This document shows, one piece after another, positions 12,552-40,893 of a DNA stretch of 64,000 nt (position 1 is the first letter of the stretch; the number at the start of each line of letters is the position of its first letter). Source of the stretch: Thalia democratica (Eukaryota); NCBI GenBank assembly GCA_965202585.1, contig OZ241827.1:49600001-49664000 (forward strand), given 5' to 3'. The notes beneath the pieces were generated by a model that saw only the letters and a program-made list of their open reading frames with translations, did not search any database and was not told where the DNA came from. The position numbers and the translations under genes are program-made.

Positions 12552-13391
12552 TTAATCAAAATCCATGGACTCTTCATGTTCATAATATGGGTGAGGCCTA
12601 GAGTTGGAGTCAGTTGCTAACCGTACAGTAGGCGGAGGGACTGAGTCTTCAGCAATATCAACAAAAGAATCTTCAGAATCTGAGTCTTCATCACCCAGGT
12701 CCCTTTCCTCGTCTGTTGACTCATTGAAGTCCATTTCATCCAGGAAAACTTTAGGTGACCCTTTGCCTTTCTTCTTTTTAGGCTTCTCAGCTAGATCTGG
12801 GCTGGCAAAAGCAGCAGCAACACCTTCATTGACCTCATTTTCAAAACCACCCATTGCAGAGTCTAGTTCTGAGTTGCAGGCTTGTTGCACTTGCTGCATA
12901 TCTTCTTGCTGTTGGTTTTCATCCTGATCTCCCCAATTAATTTTGAACCTAGTGACTCTTGGGGCTGAATCTAGTATGTTTCTGTGCAACTTTTCAAGAA
13001 TAGGTTCCTGTGGAGGCTCTTCACGCAGCTCAGGCTCCTGGTATTCATTATTCACAAAATAACCAATTCTTACAAACTCATGTGAATGGTAAGAGCAGGT
13101 GATGATACACACTGTAACTCCAACAACTTCTTGTTTGGGAATTAAGTTGGGCTTTGGTGGATCTGCTGTAAAAACAAACTTGTGTCTCCCTGAAGGTACT
13201 GGGCCAACAAGAACAGAATCAAGTGTTTGATCAAATCTCTCATCTTTTGATGAGCCTACATAGATTATTTTCCATTCAAGATCGTCCTCTAGGTTCTCCA
13301 CACAATCAAAAGTAATTTGAAATTTTAAGGGATCAGAAAACATTGCAGGATTGTCTTGTACTTCAACACCAACAATTTGAATTTTTGCCAT
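12552..13391 (-). CDS. ASF1: Histone chaperone ASF1, single-exon CDS, 279 aa, with an acidic C-terminal tail
   Basis: The ORF has the conserved ASF1 core (MAKIQI...NPAMFSDPLKFQITFDC...DLEWKIIYVGSS...DQTLDSVLVGPVPSGRHKFVF...VGVTVCIITCSY...EFVRIGYFVNNEY...PRVTRFKINW), then a Gln run, KPKKKKGK and a D/E-rich tail. Confidence 0.97.
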   Translation of the reverse strand: MAKIQIVGVEVQDNPAMFSDPLKFQITFDCVENLEDDLEWKIIYVGSSKDERFDQTLDSVLVGPVPSGRHKFVFTADPPKPNLIPKQEVVGVTVCIITCSYHSHEFVRIGYFVNNEYQEPELREEPPQEPILEKLHRNILDSAPRVTRFKINWGDQDENQQQEDMQQVQQACNSELDSAMGGFENEVNEGVAAAFASPDLAEKPKKKKGKGSPKVFLDEMDFNESTDEERDLGDEDSDSEDSFVDIAEDSVPPPTVRLATDSNSRPHPYYEHEESMDFD

Positions 13392-21920: not shown

Positions 21921-22103
21921 CTTTTAAAACCCTAAAAGATTTCTCTACCGTTTTTGCTGAATAAATAAAACAAATAAAATATATTCAGTAACCTACCGGG
22001 TAACATTAGGATTCAGCCGGATCCGGTTAATATTTTTTAAATAAGATCAGGCCGAGTCAGGATAATTTTTTAAAACTAATTTCCGGCCAGATCGAATCTT
22101 TTT

Positions 22104-29052: not shown

Positions 29053-32000
29053 TCACACTCCGATCATTTTGCAGCTCCATATCTCTGCTGTGTTTTTGTA
29101 CATGTTTACTTGGCATTCATACCCATTGTTCTCCCAATTACTTTCACGAACGAGACGTTGAGGATTTACTATTACCTAAAAATAATAAAATATACTTAAA
29201 TACAAGTAATTTTTGAACATTAGTTTACCAAAACTAGCTATTGAAATTAATTTTTAAAACTTAAAATAATCTGAAATAATGTTAAGTAAGAGTCTTTAAA
29301 TATATTTAAACAAATCTTTATTCAAAAACTATTAAACATTATTTTTTGATAGTTTCAAATAAATTTGACAATTTTGTATGCAAAACATTATGTAATACCG
29401 GTATAAAACAAAGAGTTTATATTTTTACTGTCTATATAGAACATATATCGGTTTATATAGTATATTTGTTTTGACTAAACGAGTAAAATGTGCTTTACAG
29501 TTTTTCAGCTTTTAGGACCTATTAAATATAATTTTTTTTAAATATGAGTATTATAATTTTTTCACTTGTAATATGTATTCTCCATATGGTATACCAGTAA
29601 CATCAATCCATTGGCAGTCTAGACCTGCTTTGTATATATCCATACAACCAGGCGTGATTCCTTGGTGTCCCACTTTACAGTCGAACCTTAAATATGGAAG
29701 ATTTAGAAAAATATAGACATGTTTAAAAAAATTGTTATCTGTTGAGCTTTTCTAGTATTATCTATGTATTAATACAACCCAATAGATATAAGCTTATTTT
29801 TAGAAGAAAATAAAGGTTTAAATCAAAAGCAAGCGTCTAACTTTTTTCTAGCACCACCAGTACATTCGCTGTCCTCTAAACAGAACGACGCTTTGTGACC
29901 TTCAGCAACTTTGTTTCTGTTTGTATCCAGAAGGTCGTAGTGAGTAAAAACTGCCATGCTATGGTTATGGCTGTAATTTTTTGTAGTTTAGAGTAAATGT
30001 TAAAAACTGTTTATTAGTCTATAAAATCGAAAAACACAAAAAATAACAATAACAAAAGTTTGAATACATACTACGAATTTAATAGTATTACAAAAAACAT
30101 ATTATTAATGTAATTTTCTAAGATCCAAAACTTGTTTTTACAATTTTATTTTTACAACTGTAGTAAACGTTTGTAACTTTTTCACTTTAAGTTTTTGTTT
30201 AGATAAAAAAGTTTATTTTGTTTAGCTATTACTATAAAAAACGCGCTCGTAAAATATAATTTAAAAATTTGGTCGCGTATTAAAGCTAGTAAAATTTACA
30301 AAACTGTTTTTATTACTTTGACTTGCTTACTTGTGACAATCGTGCCAAATCCAGTCTTCTTTGGCCATAGAAGGATAGAAATCGGCTTCTCCGATGTTAT
30401 GAACTGTTGTTTCAAATCTCAGAAGTCTCCTTGAAAATTAATTGTTTTGTTTTTAAATCAAGACTAAAATATAAATTTAAAAAGTTTGTTATAGTTTGAA
30501 TCTATCTTAGTGTAAGTTATAGTTTCTTATATTGTAAATTAACAAAATAACAAAATATTGTTTTCAGGCTTAACAATTTAGTTGTAAGTTTTTTGTTTTA
30601 AACTAAGTTTAAAATTGTAGAACTGATGGTGTAAGAGTATTTCAAATGATTAAAAGAGATATTAAAGCTTTAAAACTTTAGTAAGATCTGCTTCAGTAAA
30701 GTTAAAGTTAAATGTGGGTAATTAACTATGCGAAAATAAGTATATTCGAAGTAGTTTTGAATATTATTAGAAACTTACATTAAAAAATGTTACAATTACT
30801 AAAATTCAAGAGAGAAAAAGTAAATTTTGTTAATTAAATGATGATAACCTTTACTACTACAGCTCTTCATTGTGGTGATTATTTGCGTTTACAGAGACAG
30901 TAATTAAAAATTAAAAAATTAAAACACAATTAAAATCAAAAGAAGCTAGCTACATACCGCATTGACGAGTATGGGGCGCTGTTTGCTGAAGAAGAAAGAC
31001 AACCTTCACCTCTGGCGCACAATAGCGACTCAACCGATTTTTTGTCGAGGAAAAAGTGACTGATTAACCTTCGTTTGTCAAGCTTGAGGTCTGGAAGCTT
31101 TTCTACAAAGTGTCTGTACTAGTATCATGTCAATCATAATAGTTTAGGTTTAAGACTTATTGTATTGTATGTTACGTGTTCTATAAGTAAGTTCATCTGC
31201 TGTATGATACAAACTAGTAACTTACTTAAAATTGACTGCTGTTTGGATTATCAAAACTTATTTTATATATAGTTTTTGCTTATCCTAAAAGTGTTTTGTA
31301 GCAAACTTAAGCAAATTTGATTATAATATAACTTAGTAAACAAGTTCACGCTACAAAGAAATTACCTTAAAATATTTTTGATCTTGTAATTTTATAGTAC
31401 TTATGGTCTACAAAATATTAAGAGACAATCTATCAAAACTTTACTTTAATTTAATCAAAATTGAACGTATCAAAAATGTAATTTATAGTAAACCAAGCTG
31501 TGTAGAGCTAGAATAGGGGTGGGCAACGTACGGCCCGCGGGCCGGATCCGGCCCCCGGAGTCAAAATGACCGGCCCCCAAACCTTTTTTAAATTTAAATG
31601 GAATCCGGCCCGCGGACGAAATCTATCCGGCCCGCGAGTGGATGATCCGGCCCGCTAAGCATTTTAAAAATTTATATAAAATCCTACAAGCCCATGTAAA
31701 CATTACAAAATTTGTACAAAACCTTTTTTATATTATTTTCACAAAATAAACTATAAGACTTTAACCTGAAAACGTTTTTAAAAGTGGCTTTTTTTTTGTA
31801 GTAATAAAAACACTCTTTTGTTATAGTACCTGATTCTGTTTTAAGTCAGTTGAATTAATTCTTCCTGAAATTATCTAAAAAAATTGTTTGCTGAACTAAC
31901 TTTGATGATTCTACCTACCATAACAATTTTCATGAAAATGACATGTAAAAATTTGTTGTATTTCTCAGATGTCTAGTGAGTTGTTCTTATAATGTTAAGA

Positions 32001-35000
32001 AAAGTAGTTTTTAATAACATTGACACCTACTTAAAGTAAAATTGCTCAACTCTACATCTTAATAGAACATTCCAAGTTGAGACTAAAATTTGCACTCTTT
32101 TCTGCTTTTGATATTTTAATTAAGGAATTTTTGATTACTTAAATGGTTAAGTTTAACTATGACCAACTGATGAAAATATTTCAAAACAATATCTTTTTAA
32201 CCTTAATTATGATTTGTTTAGGAATTTTTTTAGGTATGTTTGTAATACCAGTTTACAATCTAACAAACTTTTAAATGAATTTTTATTAGGTTTTTAAATT
32301 AAAAGATAGTAGTTTAATTTTGTAATGTTAGTTAACTTCTGAACAATTTTATTAATGCAGCCTCGAGCCAAGGATTACCAAAATTAGATAGTTTCGGATA
32401 GTTAAATTTTTTTAATATTTAGTTTGAAATCTTAGGCTCGAGTGACTTTTAATAATTAAATTACTGGTTTTATAAAACTAACTAGTATTAATTCGGTTTA
32501 GAGTTGTGTTAAATGTAGAATTATGAGTACTTACTAATAATTAACTTAAAATTTTATACTTGAGAACCTTGGTAATTAATAAATTGACTTAAAATTTTAA
32601 AATACCAGATTAATTAGCATCCAGCCGGATCCAAGTCTTTTAAAATTAGTTCTTTTGAATAGAATCTATTCGGATACAAAACCTTGTCTAAAATTAGTAT
32701 TTAGCCGGATCCGGATAACATTTTTGAATAAAGATCCGGATCTAAAATAAGGATCCAACTGAATTCGGTAGATCACTTACTCGAAATGCTCCGGCCCGCT
32801 AAGGAATGATTTTTTTTGGATCCGGCCCTTCAATTATTTACGTTGCCCACCCCTAAGCTAGAATAAACTCACTAAAACTTACTATTAAAAACTGAATAAA
32901 AAAATTAATTAGTGGTTTTATTTTTTCATGAGAAAAAGTTTATAATCGTACTTTTTTGGTTCTATAAAATTAGTCTTTTTTAGAATGATATCAAATGAAA
33001 TTAAAAGTCTTGAGTACTATTTTCGAAATTAAAAAACAACGTTATAAAATTGTTAAAATCAAAACTAGCGTTTATAGTAATACTCTGATCAAGATACATA
33101 TATCATTACTATGTATTGTAAACTTTAGAACTTAATAAACTAAACTTTAAAGTTTTAAGCTGTATTTAAGATAAGTTTAAATTAAGGTTTGTTAAGAAAG
33201 CTAGCAGAAAAAAAACAGTTGAATGATTTTGTTAAACATACATAATACTTATTTTTTAATGTATTTTCTTATAAAACTAACCTAATAACTTTTATGATAC
33301 TAATAATGATGAATGGCTATCTATGTTTTTACTGATGTAGTTTTGTTTTTCAAGGGTTATGTTTATTTTAAGGAAAACTTTTGAAAATATTAACTGTATT
33401 ACTTTTGAATACCAAAAATAAAAAAATGTATAAAGTTATACACTTTTTTTTTTTTAATTTAGTATAAATTTAGTATTTCTAACACAACGTAAACTAAAAA
33501 AAAATTATAGAACATTTCTAAATTAGTTATATTTTAACTTGTTAGTGTAATGTAAAAATAAAACTATATTGCTGTAATCTTATAGTATGTTGTTTTAGTT
33601 AAATCAATTAGTTTTCAAATTATAGTAATTATATATTTTTCGTTAATTCTTATTCGATGGTAATAACACGAAAATAATAAAGAATTTTTATTAAACTTTG
33701 TGATAAAATACCAAAAAGGTTATATTTCATAAGCACCAAAAAGTTTCAACTTGATCGTTTTGAAAGATTAACGGCTTGAAAAAAGAAAACATAGTTTTAA
33801 TAAGATATTTATAATCTTAGAGTCTTTTATTTTTTATTAAGAAATGTTAATTTACATAATCTTTTACTTATAAATGTTTCAATGTTTTTAAGAAATTTCT
33901 AGAAAATTTGAGAAAAAATGTTAGCTCCTATCATGCGGAAAAATAACGTTCTGGATGAATAAAGATCACACGTGGTTTTGTGTCTACTAAAAGAAACATA
34001 TTCTAGACTTGTCTAGCAACAAATCAGTCTGTCGGACTGAAGATTTTTTTTTATAAAAACTGTTTACACTTATTGTTTTTAACAAAAGCATCTCAAATTG
34101 CAAAAAATCAAACAGTTTTAAGGTTTATATTTAGAAAAAGGTATGATAAAGTTAGAAAATGTAGTTAAAAAGAGTACGTGGAAAAAAAATTGTAAAAATA
34201 AAAAGTTTATTTAAACTATAAAAGCTGCTTTTTTCACTTAACTACAACTTATGATTAGTGTTACAGAAGTTGATTAAAATGTTATTTGCAGTAACTATTT
34301 TTGAGACAGTTAACCTTCTCTCATGTACAACCTAATTGCAAATCAAAATCAACAAAAACAGCCCTTTTAATCAAAACAATTAAATTTAAAAAGTTTTTGC
34401 TTATTTTCTGTTCTTCTTTTTCAACCTTCGCATTTGCTTAATGCTTTTCTTGTTTCTAGCCAGACCGCTTTGCTTTGCTTTTCTTTTCGATGCGCCTTTT
34501 CGGTGTCTTGCTGACCGACGTCCTATAAATTATTCTTTATTTTGAAAATTTAGGTAAATTATTAAAAGTTCTGTTAAAAATCGTTTATACCTTGAAAATT
34601 AGTACCAGTTTTTTTTTTCTTTAATTTAACAAAAATGAAAAAGTAAACTTTCTAACGGATTAAAACTTAAATGCATTGCAAGCGGCCTGACTAAAAACTC
34701 TTAATAGACTATCTTTATATACACTTCTACATTTAAGACTACATCAAACATGATGAATTTTATGAATTTAAAAAGACATCACAGTGTTCCGAAAAGCACA
34801 AACTAAAAAAACCATTAGTTTTCCTTCAAATCGAAAAAATTTAACTGTGTTAAAGATAAAACCTACAACAGCTTAAAAGAATAAAAGAAGGGGCTAAGCA
34901 GTTAAAGAAATGCTTTTACAAACTTATACGTAGCAAACTAACCCTGAGATGGTTGGTTAACAGCTGGTTGTTGCGATTCTTGTGGTACTACTTCTCCTCC

Positions 35001-38000
35001 TGGATATTGATTTTGTACTGGTTCTGTTATTCAAACGCAATGTTTAAAAAAATATATTTGTATATAATTTTTTTTCTTTCTTAAGATCAGGATTTGTTTT
35101 TCTTCTATGGAACTTAAACTATGCGTGTTATATTTTTACGTTAAGTTTATAGCAAATAAAACGAACGTATTTAGTATTTTCAATACCTTTATAAAAACAT
35201 AACATAAACATACTGCTACAGTTTAAATTAACAATTCATAATCATAAAATACTAATTTTTGAAAAGTTTAATTGAGAAAGTTCTTTAACCCCTGGTATTG
35301 GTTTAAAAATATAAAATAAGATTTTTTTTTACTTAAACATTTTTGTACAGTCTATATTTCTAACTTAAGAGAAGTAAAAAAAAAAACACTAAATTTTTAA
35401 AACTGTTTCATAACTAGCCTTGAGGTGGGGGATATGAGTTGTCATCGGAATAAGCATCACCTCCTACAGGTTGCCATTCATCAGCACTGTTATCCTGGAA
35501 TATATTAATTCTTTGATATATGAACTCATAATGTTTTCATTTTAGTAAGAAGCAAAAAGTTGATAGAATTTAGCTATAAAACTTAAACATGTTTACTTGA
35601 AATATAACTAAAGTATTCGATAAAAAAAAGTTTAAAAACTAGTTAGTAAAACTTCTATTAAAGTCATTGAATAATAGAGGCCTAACTAGATAGATATTTA
35701 TAATGACTTGACTATAGTTTACGAAGGCTAGATAATAAACAAACAAAAAATGATTATATTTAAATTGTAAAAAGAAAAAAAAGCTATCATATACTACAAG
35801 TACTTATTTTGTCATATTTGATAAAAAATGTTTTTAGTGGTTTTGCCTTAAAAACTTATTTCACAGTCTTTGTACGTTGTTCTTAATTTGCATTTTAATC
35901 TTTACTGTTTTAAAATTTGTGAAAAAAGCTCATTATTACAGTTTGCTACTTTTAAGAACAAACTATTTGAAATATTTCAAGCTTTTTACAAAGGTTAAAA
36001 AATAAGACTTTTTACGACTACTTTGAAAATCGACAGTTAAAATTTTATAAGTAGTCGGTAAAAGGTCATTTGGTTGTATTAAAGAAAACTCGATCAAGTA
36101 AAAATTAATTTATAGTTATTTCAAAAGCTCTATTTTATAATTATCAAATAGTTTTGGTATTTAGTTTTAACATTGTTTTCATTTAATAATTTCTAAACAA
36201 TATAGTTTTGTAATGATGTTTTAGTTCGAAGATAATAGTTAACTGGGTAATTTGCTTTGATTAAAAGAATATTTTTATTTTGTTCTAAATATACAAAGTT
36301 TCTAGCTTAAATTGAAAAATTGCAAAAGTTTAATGCGGCAAACCTAAAAAAAAAACAACTAGTGATTGTTTTAAAGAAACTATTTTATAAGTATTATTCC
36401 TGTGTAGTTCTTTATATAGATTTTTCAATATGCTTGCTTGTTATTATTTTTGAACGAAGCGTTTGCTTTTGATTATTCTTAAATAACATAAAGTCCTAGT
36501 TTTGCTGAAAGTTGTTATCTGAACAAAGCCATTAAACAAAATAATTAAAAATAAATATATATGTCATCAGAAATATTACACAAAGTCACTAATTGATAGA
36601 TATTTATAATTTTAAAACTAACGTTTACATCATTGCCTGGGTTAGGGTTAAATGGCAGCACATATGGATTGGAATTTCCGCTTGCTCCAGAGCTGATAAA
36701 CGCATTTATTATTAAAGTCTTGTTCTTACATTAAATATTCAACATTGAAAGTATTTGTTAATTAAAAAAAAGTATTCAACACGAACATTTAACTAATGAT
36801 TTTACGTAGCTCCTTTAAATTAACAAAACTTATTTTTATTAACTAAATATCAATACTTATTTAGAAATAAATAAAAAGTTGGTAAGTTGTACACCAAAAG
36901 TAATCAACCTTTTACAGTTATTTATAGTAGTTGACAATTAATACATAATTAAAAAGCTCTTTTGGAAGAAGTTTCGTTAAAGTTTGCAAAAATTTTTCAA
37001 AACGTATTTTTTGCTTTAATAGTTTGTGATATCATTAAGTTAGTTAAAAACTTTATATACTAATAATTACATTTTTCCTAAGTTCAGTTATATACAGTTT
37101 GATATAACTTCAACTTTCGTATATGTTTAAGTTAATAGCTATTCTAATTTACTCAATCAAAACAACTAGTTAATTAGAAAAAAAACCTTGAAGAGTTTGA
37201 AACATCCCCCTCTGACGGATTATATATCGGCAACGTGTAGCTGTACGGTGAACTATTATCCGTTTCCCCGGCACCTTGGTTCTCGTAGTAACCGCCCCAT
37301 CCGTTCGAGCTGCCCACACCACCAGTACCTGTGTCACCCCAGTTGCTCGTTTCTCCATTGCTCGGGCTGCCACCCTGACTTCCGTAGCCGTAGCTTTCGC
37401 CCGAAGAGGGGTTCGATGGTGCGCTCTGGCCTCCGTTGTAGGGGTATATGGGCGGCGGAACGCTGTCTCCAGTGTTACTTTCGCCGTATCCTCCATATAT
37501 ATTCTGCTCGCTACTTGCCTGACCCCCGTAAGCACCATCACCGTTTGAACTGTCCGATCCGGGGACGGGGTAAGCGGGGAACGAATAAATCGATTCGCTC
37601 GAATCAGCGCCCGGCAATGCCGATCCAGAGTTTGAAAGGTAGGGATTGTTAGAAGCGTCGTCTGGCGAGGAAACGTAGTTGTTGTTCAAGTAAGGGTTGG
37701 ACAAGGTGTCTTGGTTTCCGTAATTGTACAATGATGACGGGCTCGCCGGCTCTTCTTCGCTACCTTGATTAGTGCTTCCGTAAGGATCTGTGTAACCGTA
37801 ATTGTTAGGAGAAGATGACCCTGTTGCGTCACTGGAACCGGCGGGGCCTGGTAAATAGTAGGAGTTGTAAGTGTTGCCAGAATTGCTTGAACCAGATTCA
37901 ACCCCAACATTTGCGTATGGGTTCGGTGCTCCGGTTTCAGTTTCCGCTGAAGGTATTGATGGCGAAGAGTCTCCGAAACCCTGCGATGATCCATAAGGAT

Positions 38001-40893
38001 AAGAATCTGCTCCGCCGTAGTCAGATGATTCTGAGTTTCCAAACTGCCCGTAAGATCCTCCTGACGTGTCTCCGTAGTTCGGTGTGAACTGAGACCCACC
38101 CGTGCTACCTCCGAAACTTGATCCTTGAGAATTTCCCAACGGGTAAGCACCAGCTGAGCTCGAAGAGTCACCATAGTCTGCAGGTTGTGAGTAAACACCC
38201 GCGCCACTCGTGTCGCCATAAGAACCGCCGGCGTTGCTTCCGCCACTCGGTCCATTTACTGAGCCCTGAGATCCACTTGAACCGTAAGGATAAGAACCAG
38301 ACAAACCAGAATTTTGCGAACCGCCGTAAGAGTTGCTTCCTCCGTATGAGTTGCTTGTTCCATAAGGATTGGATCCTGTGCTGCCAGAAGACCCGTAGCT
38401 TGTATCTGAATTACCACCATACGAATTATTTGTACCGTAAGGATTTGAACCTGTGCTACCAGAAGATCCATAGCCCGTATCTGAAGCACCGTTGTAAGGC
38501 GATGAAGCACCTGCTGAGTTTCCAGCACCGCCGTATGAAGGGTAAATATTTCCGTTGGAAGTTCCTCCAAAACTGTTTTCATTACCCGCTATTGGTGAAG
38601 AATTGGAAGAGTCATAAGGGTAAGATGAAGCTCCACTTTGGCCAACGTTTGATTGACTGTTTGTTGCTTGACTGTTATACGAATTGTAAGGATCAGAACT
38701 GCTACCTCCGCTGTATGCGGAGTTGTTATCTCCGTAGGAGCTACTCCCGCTATACGGATACCCTCCACTGCTTGCTGAACCTCCACCGTAGCTGTTAGAA
38801 GATCCCGAGGTTTGGCCGTACGGGTATGAACTACTGCTGGAAGAACCCCCTCCGTAAGAGGGTGCTGGTTGGTAACCACCACTGTTGGTAGAGCTACCAC
38901 CATATCCACTACTTCCGCTGTTAGACTGGCCTCCGTAAGGATTACTGCTTTGAGACGAACCTCCGCTACCATACGGGTCGTACGGATTGCTACCTCCTAC
39001 AGAGCTACCTGAATTAGACCCTCCTGACCCAGCTCCGTATTGGTTACCACTGTAAGCACCAGTATCACTCCCACCATACGGATAACCACCTGATGAGCTT
39101 CCGCCACCGTAAGAATTAGTGTTTGCCGTGTTGCCGTAGGGAGTTTGTGCGCTTGAACTACCGTATGGTGAGCCTCCATATCCTCCAGAACTTCCGTAAG
39201 GTGAACTACCTCCAGAACTTCCGTAAGGTGAACTGCCTCCAGAACTTCCGTAAAGCGAACTACCTCCAGAACTTCCGTAAGGTGAACTGCCTCCAGAACT
39301 GCCATAAGGTGAACTGCCTCCAGAACTGCCGTACCCTCCGTATCCTTGACTCGCTGTTGGTTGCCCTCCATAACTGCCTCCGTTTGAACCGTAGGAGTTG
39401 CTCATGTAAGGGTTGACGGAGCTTGTTGGACCCCCACCGTACTGAGAACCATAGCCACCGCCGTAAGGAGATCCACCTCCGTATTGGTTCATCCCGTGCA
39501 TACCACCGCTCATGTACGGGTTATTAGAGATGGAAGCTCCGCCGTAAGGACTGCCATACCCACCAGAAGGCGACCCGTATCCTCCATTTCCCCCTCCGTA
39601 GTTGTAACCGCCTCCGTGCATACCAGAAACGTACAGGTTACCGTAACCACCTGCCCCGTATCCGCCTGCGCCGTAGCCCTGAGTCGGCGACTGGTACCCT
39701 CCTGCGCCGTAACCCCCATATCCCCCACCGTAACCACTACCTATCGGTTGGTAAGCGTTCGAACCTCCGGTCGTTATAGACCCAAGTCCGTAGCGGCCCG
39801 ACGTGGGCGAGCTGTACCCGCCGCCGTAGCCTCCACCGTAACCGCTGTTGCCGTATCCTCCTCCGTACGAAGGTCCGCTCGGAGAAGACGACGGGTACTG
39901 GTATAAGCCGCCGTTGACACCCATGCCTCCTCCGCTGTAAGCGTTGTATCCGGGGTCGTTAGTGTAGCTCACTTGGTCGTCGTTGGGGTTGTACCTGGTT
40001 GAGGAGCTTCCGATTCTGATGTCTTGACCCGTTGAACCGCTGCTGTAGCTGTTGCTTCCACCTAAAAAAAATTGATGAAGTTTGTTAAATGGTTATTTTA
40101 ATCTGATTTTTTATATGGTTGTTTACTTTTTTACTTTTCAACTCAAGGAAGAGCAACATTAACTAAGAAACTCTACTGATAATTTAGCAGTACATAACTT
40201 ACGAATTGGAGAGTAAGCTGGCTGGTAAGGAGTTTGGTTTGAGCCGGACGTGCTTCCCGAAGAAGACCCGGAGTAAGGGTACGATCCCGACGTACCTCCG
40301 TAAGGCGACCCACCGTACTGAGACGAGCCTCCGTAACCTCCGGAACTTCCGTAAGGTGAGCTGCCCCCAGAACTTCCGTAACCTCCAGAGCTTCCGTAGG
40401 AAAGATAGTCGCTCGAAGAATCTGTTGACGAAGACTCGACGCTTGCCCTTCCCGGAGCGTCTTCCGTGGACGGATCGGAAAGCGAGGTGTACCTTATCTG
40501 CTCGGGAAAGGAATAATCAGCCGACTCCATGCTGAGCCCGACGTTGCTGTTGCTTCCGCCGCTGTTTCCACTATTACTAGAGTCGTAGCTGCCGAAGGTG
40601 TCCGAGTAGCCTCCCGAGTTGTAGCCGCCCGAGTCCGTCGGAATACCGTAGCCGTGATCGTTGTACGAACCCGGGGTTTCGTAGTAGGACGCGCTAGGGG
40701 TGTCGGAGGGGACGTCTGGTGACTGCCGCTTGGAGTGGTGGCGCCTCCGGTGGTGCTCCTTTATTCTTTGTAGGATCGGCTTTTGGAATTTTTCGAGAAC
40801 GGCCCGTTTTTTGGTTGCTCTCGATTGCACATCTTTGGTCAGCAAGTTTAGAAATATTGACAATATAATTATTGATAATATTTTCTTTCCCAT
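29053..40893 (-). CDS. LOX: Secreted lysyl oxidase (LOX/LOXL1-type, no SRCR domains) with a very long Gly/Ser/Tyr-rich pro-region; long isoform about 1,469 aa
   Basis: Exons 40893-40203 (signal peptide [18 protein letters not shown]), 40061-37187, 36692-36623, 35494-35419 (GC donor), 35023-34943, then catalytic exons 31102-30958, 30429-30331, 29970-29842, 29686-29566, 29175-29053. Total 4,410 nt, in frame. Catalytic motifs present: KLPDL, RLLRF, WIWHDCHNHNHSM (Cu histidines), [12 protein letters not shown] (LTQ Lys), [23 protein letters not shown] (LTQ Tyr), VIVNP. LOX identity is firm; linkage to the upstream exons is inferred from phase and from the lack of any other signal-peptide exon. 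Confidence 0.85.
31514..32855. mobile_element. Non-autonomous hAT (Buster-type) element in the LOX intron upstream of the catalytic exons
   Basis: Perfect 17-bp TIRs TAGGGGTGGGCAACGTA / TACGTTGCCCACCCCTA; perfect 8-bp TSD AGCTAGAA at 31506-31513 and 32856-32863; CCGGCCCGC subterminal repeats. Decayed relatives lie near 1297, 10630, 24278 and 27670-27960. Confidence 0.92.
34401..40893 (-). CDS. Alternative short isoform of the same locus: secreted Gly/Ser/Tyr-rich protein (about 1,304 aa) ending in a Lys/Arg-rich tail, without the LOX domain
   Basis: Exon 34522-34401 has an AG acceptor and continues the frame from the phase-1 exon 35023-34943. It encodes [40 protein letters not shown] then TAA, with a minus-strand AATAAA at 34211-34206. 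Total 3,915 nt, in frame. Confidence 0.6.
39182..39331 (-). repeat. Coding 27-bp tandem repeat (GGSSPYGSS, about 5.5 copies)
   Basis: Plus-strand unit CCTCCAGAACTTCCGTAAGGTGAACT(A/G); the same unit reappears in exon 1 at about 40330-40400. Confidence 0.9.

Follow-up and report, generated by a model that had tools for sequence, protein, structure and literature searches.

Can a single gene encode both a lysyl oxidase (LOX) and the protein that this enzyme cross-links? The question is raised by a locus in a stretch of 64,000 nucleotides (nt) from Thalia democratica (contig OZ241827.1, positions 49,600,001 to 49,664,000; the whole stretch is hereafter called the window, and positions are counted within it). 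On the minus strand of this locus, exons for a long Gly/Ser/Tyr-rich region, hereafter the arm, lie upstream of exons for a LOX domain, and an initial annotation had proposed that the choice between two terminal exons yields either the enzyme or a structural protein with a Lys-rich tail. Our computation gave no support to one gene that makes an enzyme and a lysine-tailed substrate by exon choice. The locus probably contains a single gene of 10 exons for a secreted LOX, with an arm of ~1,205 residues that would act like the pro-region of LOX and LOXL1.

The exon chain was built from reading frames and splice sites on the minus strand, and sequences from two related species, called here species 2 and species 3, were used for comparison. 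The species 2 material consisted of two metatranscriptome contigs (L001 and L002) and two genomic contigs (L003 and L004), and the species 3 material consisted of Logan RNA-seq contigs (L005-L013) from 11 runs. The full model runs from 40893 to 29053 and encodes 1,467 residues, in the order putative signal peptide, basic stretch of 33 residues, arm and LOX domain. Exon 1 (40203-40893) contains the ATG, the putative signal peptide, the basic stretch and the start of the Gly/Ser/Tyr-rich region, and it ends in phase 1 at the donor C/GTAAGT (the slash marks the exon boundary). Judged by eye, residues 1-24 resemble a signal peptide, with MGKK followed by a hydrophobic run of 14 residues, and the basic stretch (residues 25-57) contains 6 Lys, 7 Arg and 4 His, including dibasic sites. 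Exon 2 (37187-40061, 2875 nt) encodes most of the lysine-free low-complexity region and shares motifs with the species 3 mRNA. It is followed by exon 3 (36629-36692, 64 nt), also low-complexity and collinear with the species 3 open reading frame (ORF), whose boundaries are inferred; by exon 4 (35419-35494, 76 nt), with a conserved D/E-W-Q-x-V motif; and by exon 5 (34943-35023, 81 nt), the last before the LOX exons, with the donor AGG/GTTAGT. The five arm exons (40893-34943) sum to 3787 nt and end in phase 1, which bears out the phase given initially. An intron of 3,840 nt separates exon 5 from LOX exon 1. The surrounding genome is very AT-rich, with 21-30% guanine plus cytosine (GC) except for one peak of 53% GC at 38-40 kilobases (kb).

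The evidence that joins the arm to the enzyme comes from the relatives. When LOX exon 3 was used as the query against 1.84 billion representative proteins, a single close match was found, P0003, 86% identical and encoded by L001, a 2-kb contig of species 2 that has a sister contig without introns, L002. In both contigs the LOX sequence is preceded in the same frame, uninterrupted for >330 codons, by a low-complexity sequence rich in Ser, Gly, Tyr, Pro and Asp. The genomic contigs of species 2 (25-29% GC) have the same LOX exon boundaries as the window, and a phase-1 intron lies ahead of 'EKLPDL', offset by one codon relative to that of the window. P0003, used as a query in turn, led to a single close relative, P0154 of species 3, and to no ORF of Thalia democratica. 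P0154 is encoded on contigs from 11 separate RNA-seq runs, in a single ORF of at least 711 codons whose 5' end is open. Its GSSG..SPY repeats lead by way of '...NIQTPEKLPDLRLDKRRL' into LOX; the ORF passes '...VNIQTPEKLPDLRLDKRRL' and the LOX domain, and then reaches a stop and a 3' untranslated region. The spliced window model is collinear with this ORF across exons 2-5, with the common motifs SPSSLY and D-T-x-SNPYL, a long identical stretch ending in x-x-LP, a lone W-Q-x-V and 'VN..(S/T)..EKLPDL', and at the junction the window reads '...VNQPSQ/EKLPDL' and species 3 '...VNIQTP/EKLPDL'. In the 3.3 kb between the proposed tail exon and LOX exon 1 (34400-31103) we found no hydrophobic ORF that starts with ATG and offers a usable phase-1 donor, in agreement with the earlier remark that no other signal-peptide exon lies between them. 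Since the related mRNAs join the arm to LOX in one frame and the intron offers no credible alternative signal-peptide exon, we conclude from these sequence comparisons that a junction of the 34943 to 31102 type is real and that arm and LOX form one gene, as the initial annotation had suggested.

The five LOX exons encode a complete domain of 205 residues ending in TGA, and each of them matches the Pfam family PF01186 (with per-exon E values between 9e-4 and 4.5e-19). LOX exon 1 (30958-31102, PF01186 positions 1-40) is entered in phase 1 and opens with 'E-KLPDL', one base being taken from the upstream exon; LOX exon 2 (30331-30429, positions 51-85) terminates within the copper-binding motif W-I-W-H-D-C-H-N; LOX exon 3 (29842-29970, positions 84-129) contains H-N-H-S-M and the lysine of the lysine tyrosylquinone (LTQ) cofactor, and its end is common to the species 2 genomic contig L004; LOX exon 4 (29566-29686, positions 128-171) contains the LTQ tyrosine (CMDIY) and the DCQWID motif; and LOX exon 5 (29053-29175, positions 170-204) encodes the C-terminus, with the stop TGA at 29053-29055 and a second TGA after it. 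The species 3 protein matched PF01186 over positions 1-204 with an E value of 2.6e-71, and the solved structure that best matched it was human LOXL2 (PDB 5ZE3, E value of 1.2e-56). The window domain was aligned with vertebrate LOX, LOXL2, LOXL3 and LOXL5. The copper motif W-x-W-H-x-C-H-x-H-x-H is intact (WIWHDCHNHNH in the window, WEWHSCHNHFH in LOX and WIWHDCHRHYH in LOXL2), both LTQ precursors are present and aligned (Lys in GHKASF and Tyr in CMDIY), and all 10 Cys of the domain fall at conserved columns. The LOXL2 counterparts of the LTQ residues are K653 and Y689. The phase-1 start, copper histidines, LTQ residues and Cys count noted initially are all present. To judge by its sequence, the protein is a member of the lysyl oxidase family in every feature tested, and every catalytic residue of the domain is kept.

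The LOX domains of the window, species 2 and species 3 form one clade, the two relatives being 75-76% identical to the window. In the tree, this clade falls into neither of the vertebrate groups; it has a long branch (1.8) and is 44-47% identical to each group. Pfam searches of exon 1, exon 2 and the pre-LOX part of species 3 revealed no domain, and, as in the LOX/L1/L5 superfamily, the protein is SRCR-less and has low-complexity sequence ahead of 'KLPDL'. The absence of SRCR and the 'LPDL' start incline the clade to the LOX/L1/L5 type, whereas the tree favours neither group.

The arm (residues 58-1262, 1,205 residues) is a disordered sequence composed mainly of Ser (289), Gly (282), Tyr (138), Asn (98) and Pro (96), it has no Cys, and its charge turns net acidic nearer to LOX. 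The Tyr residues occur chiefly in G-Y-G, P-Y-G and S-Y-G contexts. Its DNA is largely non-repetitive, with one tandem array in exon 2 (39182-39333, 5.6 copies of a 27-nt unit encoding GGSSPYGSS). Lys is absent from the whole arm (0/1,205) and from the pre-LOX parts of the two relatives (0/506 and 0/371), in contrast with 14-15 Lys per 205-residue LOX domain in the three species and 16 in the 280 residues of a neighbouring ASF1-like ORF; outside the enzyme and the signal peptide, the only Lys are the six of the basic stretch. An arm without Lys in three species cannot itself be a LOX substrate, and the reading of the Gly/Tyr-rich domain as the oxidisable substrate is therefore not supported. 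The exclusion of Lys may shield the arm against the enzyme to which it is joined, or may simply reflect the usual make-up of Tyr/Gly/Ser-rich self-associating domains. FUS-type Ser/Tyr/Gly-rich domains, resilin, shematrins and KRMPs are of similar make-up, with many G-Y-G and S-Y-G motifs and near-zero Lys, and to our knowledge none of them has a LOX domain. They show no sequence homology to the arm, which matched no Pfam family and whose look-alikes in the Atlas were only compositional, with scores of 0.66 or less. For residues 600-932 of the exon-2 ORF, a database of 5.8 billion proteins yielded no match, the sequence itself included, which indicates that proteins and long transcripts of this species are absent from that database.

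The tail proposed as the alternative to LOX corresponds to a purine-rich island at 34401-34522 on the minus strand (A57 G31 C20 T11 in 119 coding bases, 42% GC). Under this proposal, polyadenylation within the intron would produce a Gly/Tyr-rich LOX substrate with a K/R tail, and splicing to the LOX exons would produce an enzyme with the same arm. The letters of the island are as described: the phases fit, a TAG/ acceptor-like site precedes it, and in phase 1 it encodes a K/R-rich peptide of 40 residues followed by TAA, with the first AATAAA at 34211, ~190 nt downstream. The product of arm plus tail would have 1,302 residues, and the tail would bring 11 Lys to a Lys-free arm. Gly/Tyr-rich matrix proteins with a short basic end are in fact known, as in the shematrins and KRMPs of molluscs. 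In addition, the GC content of the island is exon-like, and the island is the third-highest GC peak of the intron, after two that lie in a transposon-like element. However, none of the signals stands above chance. Purines make up 74% of the island and T only 9%; with T so scarce, stop codons are rare and each of the three frames is open for 26-42 codons, while a K/R-rich peptide is what A/G-rich DNA translates into. When the segment is shuffled, the required frame survives in 15% of mononucleotide and 34% of dinucleotide trials; of the 214 AG sites in this intron, 4 are followed by at least 40 open phase-1 codons; and AATAAA is found nine times in the intron, its frequency on the minus strand being one per ~306 nt. 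The tract ahead of the acceptor is A-rich, a poor polypyrimidine tract. A BLAST comparison of the intron with the whole window gave no second copy of the island, and BLAST and tBLASTn of the tail against all related loci fetched gave no match. No basic tail was seen in the mRNA contigs of species 2 or species 3, no ORF sharing the pre-LOX region of species 3 with a different C-terminus was found when searched for, and the contigs of 11 of 11 species 3 runs read unbroken through the junction into LOX. Exact-pattern scans of metagenome_contigs with the end of window exon 5 and with the last pre-LOX exon of species 2 each returned 0 matches; as the second missed even L001, that sample is absent from the collection. 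The island is no known RNA gene, since Rfam and tRNA scans of the region 28.5-41.5 kb gave no relevant match. A decayed eL41 retrocopy was also considered, on account of a likeness to 'MRRLKKK', and was dropped; the island has no Met start, and the likeness was put down to low-complexity coincidence. Most likely the island is plain intron with a frame left open by its low T content. The tail isoform, with features at chance level, is unsupported, and we regard a terminal-exon switch as improbable.

Three other explanations of the locus concern how, or whether, the two parts are held together. The initial annotation had pointed to an internal donor at 34466/34465 (AGCG/GTCTGG), which would place a convertase-type site, RRSAR, before LOX. 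The GT is present and the 57-nt segment preserves phase 1; the site is weak, and neither related mRNA has RRSAR or any other basic insert ahead of 'EKLPDL', which leaves this variant scarcely credible. A pair of genes, in which the Gly/Tyr-rich gene ends upstream and LOX is expressed from its own unseen 5' exon, would account for the 3.8-kb gap between the parts, and the species 2 transcripts do start immediately ahead of their repeat exon, in sequence that is collinear with the genome. This explanation is very improbable, since LOX exon 1 starts in phase 1 with neither Met nor signal peptide, the gap contains no candidate first exon, and the mRNAs of two relatives fuse low-complexity sequence to LOX in one frame. 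More plausible, though still doubtful, is a single product cleaved after secretion as in pro-LOX, where the freed arm would be a matrix or gel component hardened by tyrosine chemistry or through the N-terminal Lys cluster, and the free enzyme would act nearby. The 138 Tyr in their mostly G-Y-G, P-Y-G and S-Y-G settings, the clustering of the 6 Lys at residues 25-57, a length far beyond that of any known LOX pro-region, and the established release of the pro-region by proteolysis in LOX and LOXL1 (PMC8951505) all speak for it; the three species show no conserved cleavage motif before 'EKLPDL', and the N-terminal dibasic sites could instead serve to strip the Lys cluster. This explanation overlaps with the one that we favour, and the two are not mutually exclusive. 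Lastly, the locus might encode a self-contained matrix-hardening module, in which Lys-free arms self-assemble, perhaps as a condensate, and the tethered LOX oxidises terminal Lys in trans, welding the arms end to end. Lys would then be confined to the N-terminal basic stretch, which is conserved in position, and, if it is real, the K/R tail, and the exclusion of Lys would restrict cross-links to the ends; we consider both this module and its placement of the Lys unlikely.

In vertebrates, the pro-regions of LOX and LOXL1 direct deposition onto the matrix and are cleaved off by BMP1 or ADAMTS proteases (PMC8951505). Like the window gene, vertebrate LOX, LOXL1 and LOXL5 have a C-terminal LTQ/copper domain starting from 'LPDL' and no SRCR (PMC8951505, PMC4448552), and fish LOX also has a disordered stretch rich in Tyr, Pro, Gly and Asp directly upstream of the domain. 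The upstream region of the vertebrate proteins is ~150-350 residues long and Arg-rich or Pro-rich, whereas that of the window protein has ~1,240 residues and a Gly/Ser/Tyr-rich, Lys-free arm; unlike in vertebrate LOX and LOXL1, no BMP1-type site was recognised in it. The catalytic domain is ~45-47% identical to those of LOX, LOXL1 and LOXL5 and falls outside their tree group. With human LOXL2 (5ZE3) and the LOXL2/3/4 proteins it shares the His triad, the LTQ Lys/Tyr, an identical cysteine pattern and a similar mid-domain; in contrast to them, the window protein has no SRCR repeats and no C-terminal extension past the last Cys, and its identity to them (~45-47%) equals that to LOX. Grau-Bove et al. 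(2015, PMC4448552) attribute 'no recognizable associated domains' to the LOX/L1/L5-type proteins of tunicates and cephalochordates, and the lack of a domain match in the window arm fits the description of the tunicate proteins, whose N-terminal region matches no domain family; that study does not describe a Gly/Ser/Tyr arm of >1,000 residues. In view of the Tyr-rich disordered stretch that immediately precedes 'LPDL' in fish LOX, the arm may be an old feature of SRCR-less lysyl oxidases in greatly enlarged form.

In the reading that we favour, one gene with one arm-bearing secreted enzyme, the arm would take the role of the vertebrate LOX and LOXL1 pro-regions. It would place or hold the enzyme in the extracellular matrix, perhaps self-associating through its many Tyr-Gly motifs, and might be cut off later. 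The enzyme would oxidise lysines of other matrix proteins, and the Lys-free arm would be spared cross-linking by its own enzyme.

Several points weigh against this reading. The role given to the arm is drawn by analogy only, and no conserved cleavage motif was seen ahead of 'EKLPDL' across the three species. The splice junctions of the window are inferred from the relatives, and the sole in-frame donor of exon 4 (35494-35419) is of the GC type (CAAG/GCTAGT, window 35413-35418). The plain-intron account of the island leaves unexplained its exon-like GC content of 42%, compared with 26% for the intron. In species 2, the repeats upstream of LOX contain three in-frame TAA at Tyr positions, each within CCATAAGG where sister repeats have CCATATGG or CCATATAG, as well as a frame slip of 1 nt, and both the TAA and the slip are identical in the RNA and genomic contigs. 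Either the stop-bearing stretch lies outside the mature coding sequence of species 2 or the arm is shrinking there; these stops thus indicate that the long arm is not uniformly kept, or that the contigs are not mature mRNA.

Other observations were made on these same regions. The GC donor of exon 4 has indirect backing from the collinearity with the species 3 mRNA. The TAA-bearing repeats of species 2 (CCATAAGGTTCT) are located at 330-470 of L001 and 1684-1822 of L003. Reading TAA as Tyr in species 2 was considered and rejected, since the 138 Tyr codons of the window arm include no in-frame stop and the three LOX ORFs end in ordinary stops. Also in species 2, an in-frame GT...AG segment of 75 nt at ~846-920 of L002 is kept in that contig and spliced out in L001, adding 25 arm residues to P0151 relative to P0003. 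Within the 3,840-nt intron of the window, a probable DNA transposon or miniature inverted-repeat transposable element of ~1.35 kb occupies 31508-32861, with 23-nt terminal inverted repeats (CTAGAATAGGGGTGGGCAACGTA, 91% complementary) and subterminal GGGCCGGAT repeats of 60% GC. Additionally, an intron stretch of 51 nt at 32689-32739 is 82% identical to 22001-22051, located 10.7 kb away, and is probably a short dispersed repeat.

Two neighbouring features, both on the minus strand, were recognised in the window. Scattered ORF pieces between 44889 and 51793 resemble a CYP4-type cytochrome P450 (EAMRLYP..., WQEKCREEI...) and, located upstream of the LOX gene, probably form part of a P450 gene with several exons. 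A single-exon ORF of 279 residues at 12552-13391 resembles the histone chaperone ASF1, with a long acidic tail.

If the fusion of arm and enzyme works as we infer, it would extend to an arm of ~1,200 residues, which resembles Tyr/Gly/Ser-rich self-assembly domains and is Lys-free in three species, the principle known from vertebrate LOX and LOXL1 that a cross-linking enzyme is guided to its matrix by a disordered pro-region. It would offer a natural case for studying how enzymes outside the cell become tethered to the material that they harden or are made part of it; here that material may be the tunic or a different gel of a pelagic tunicate.

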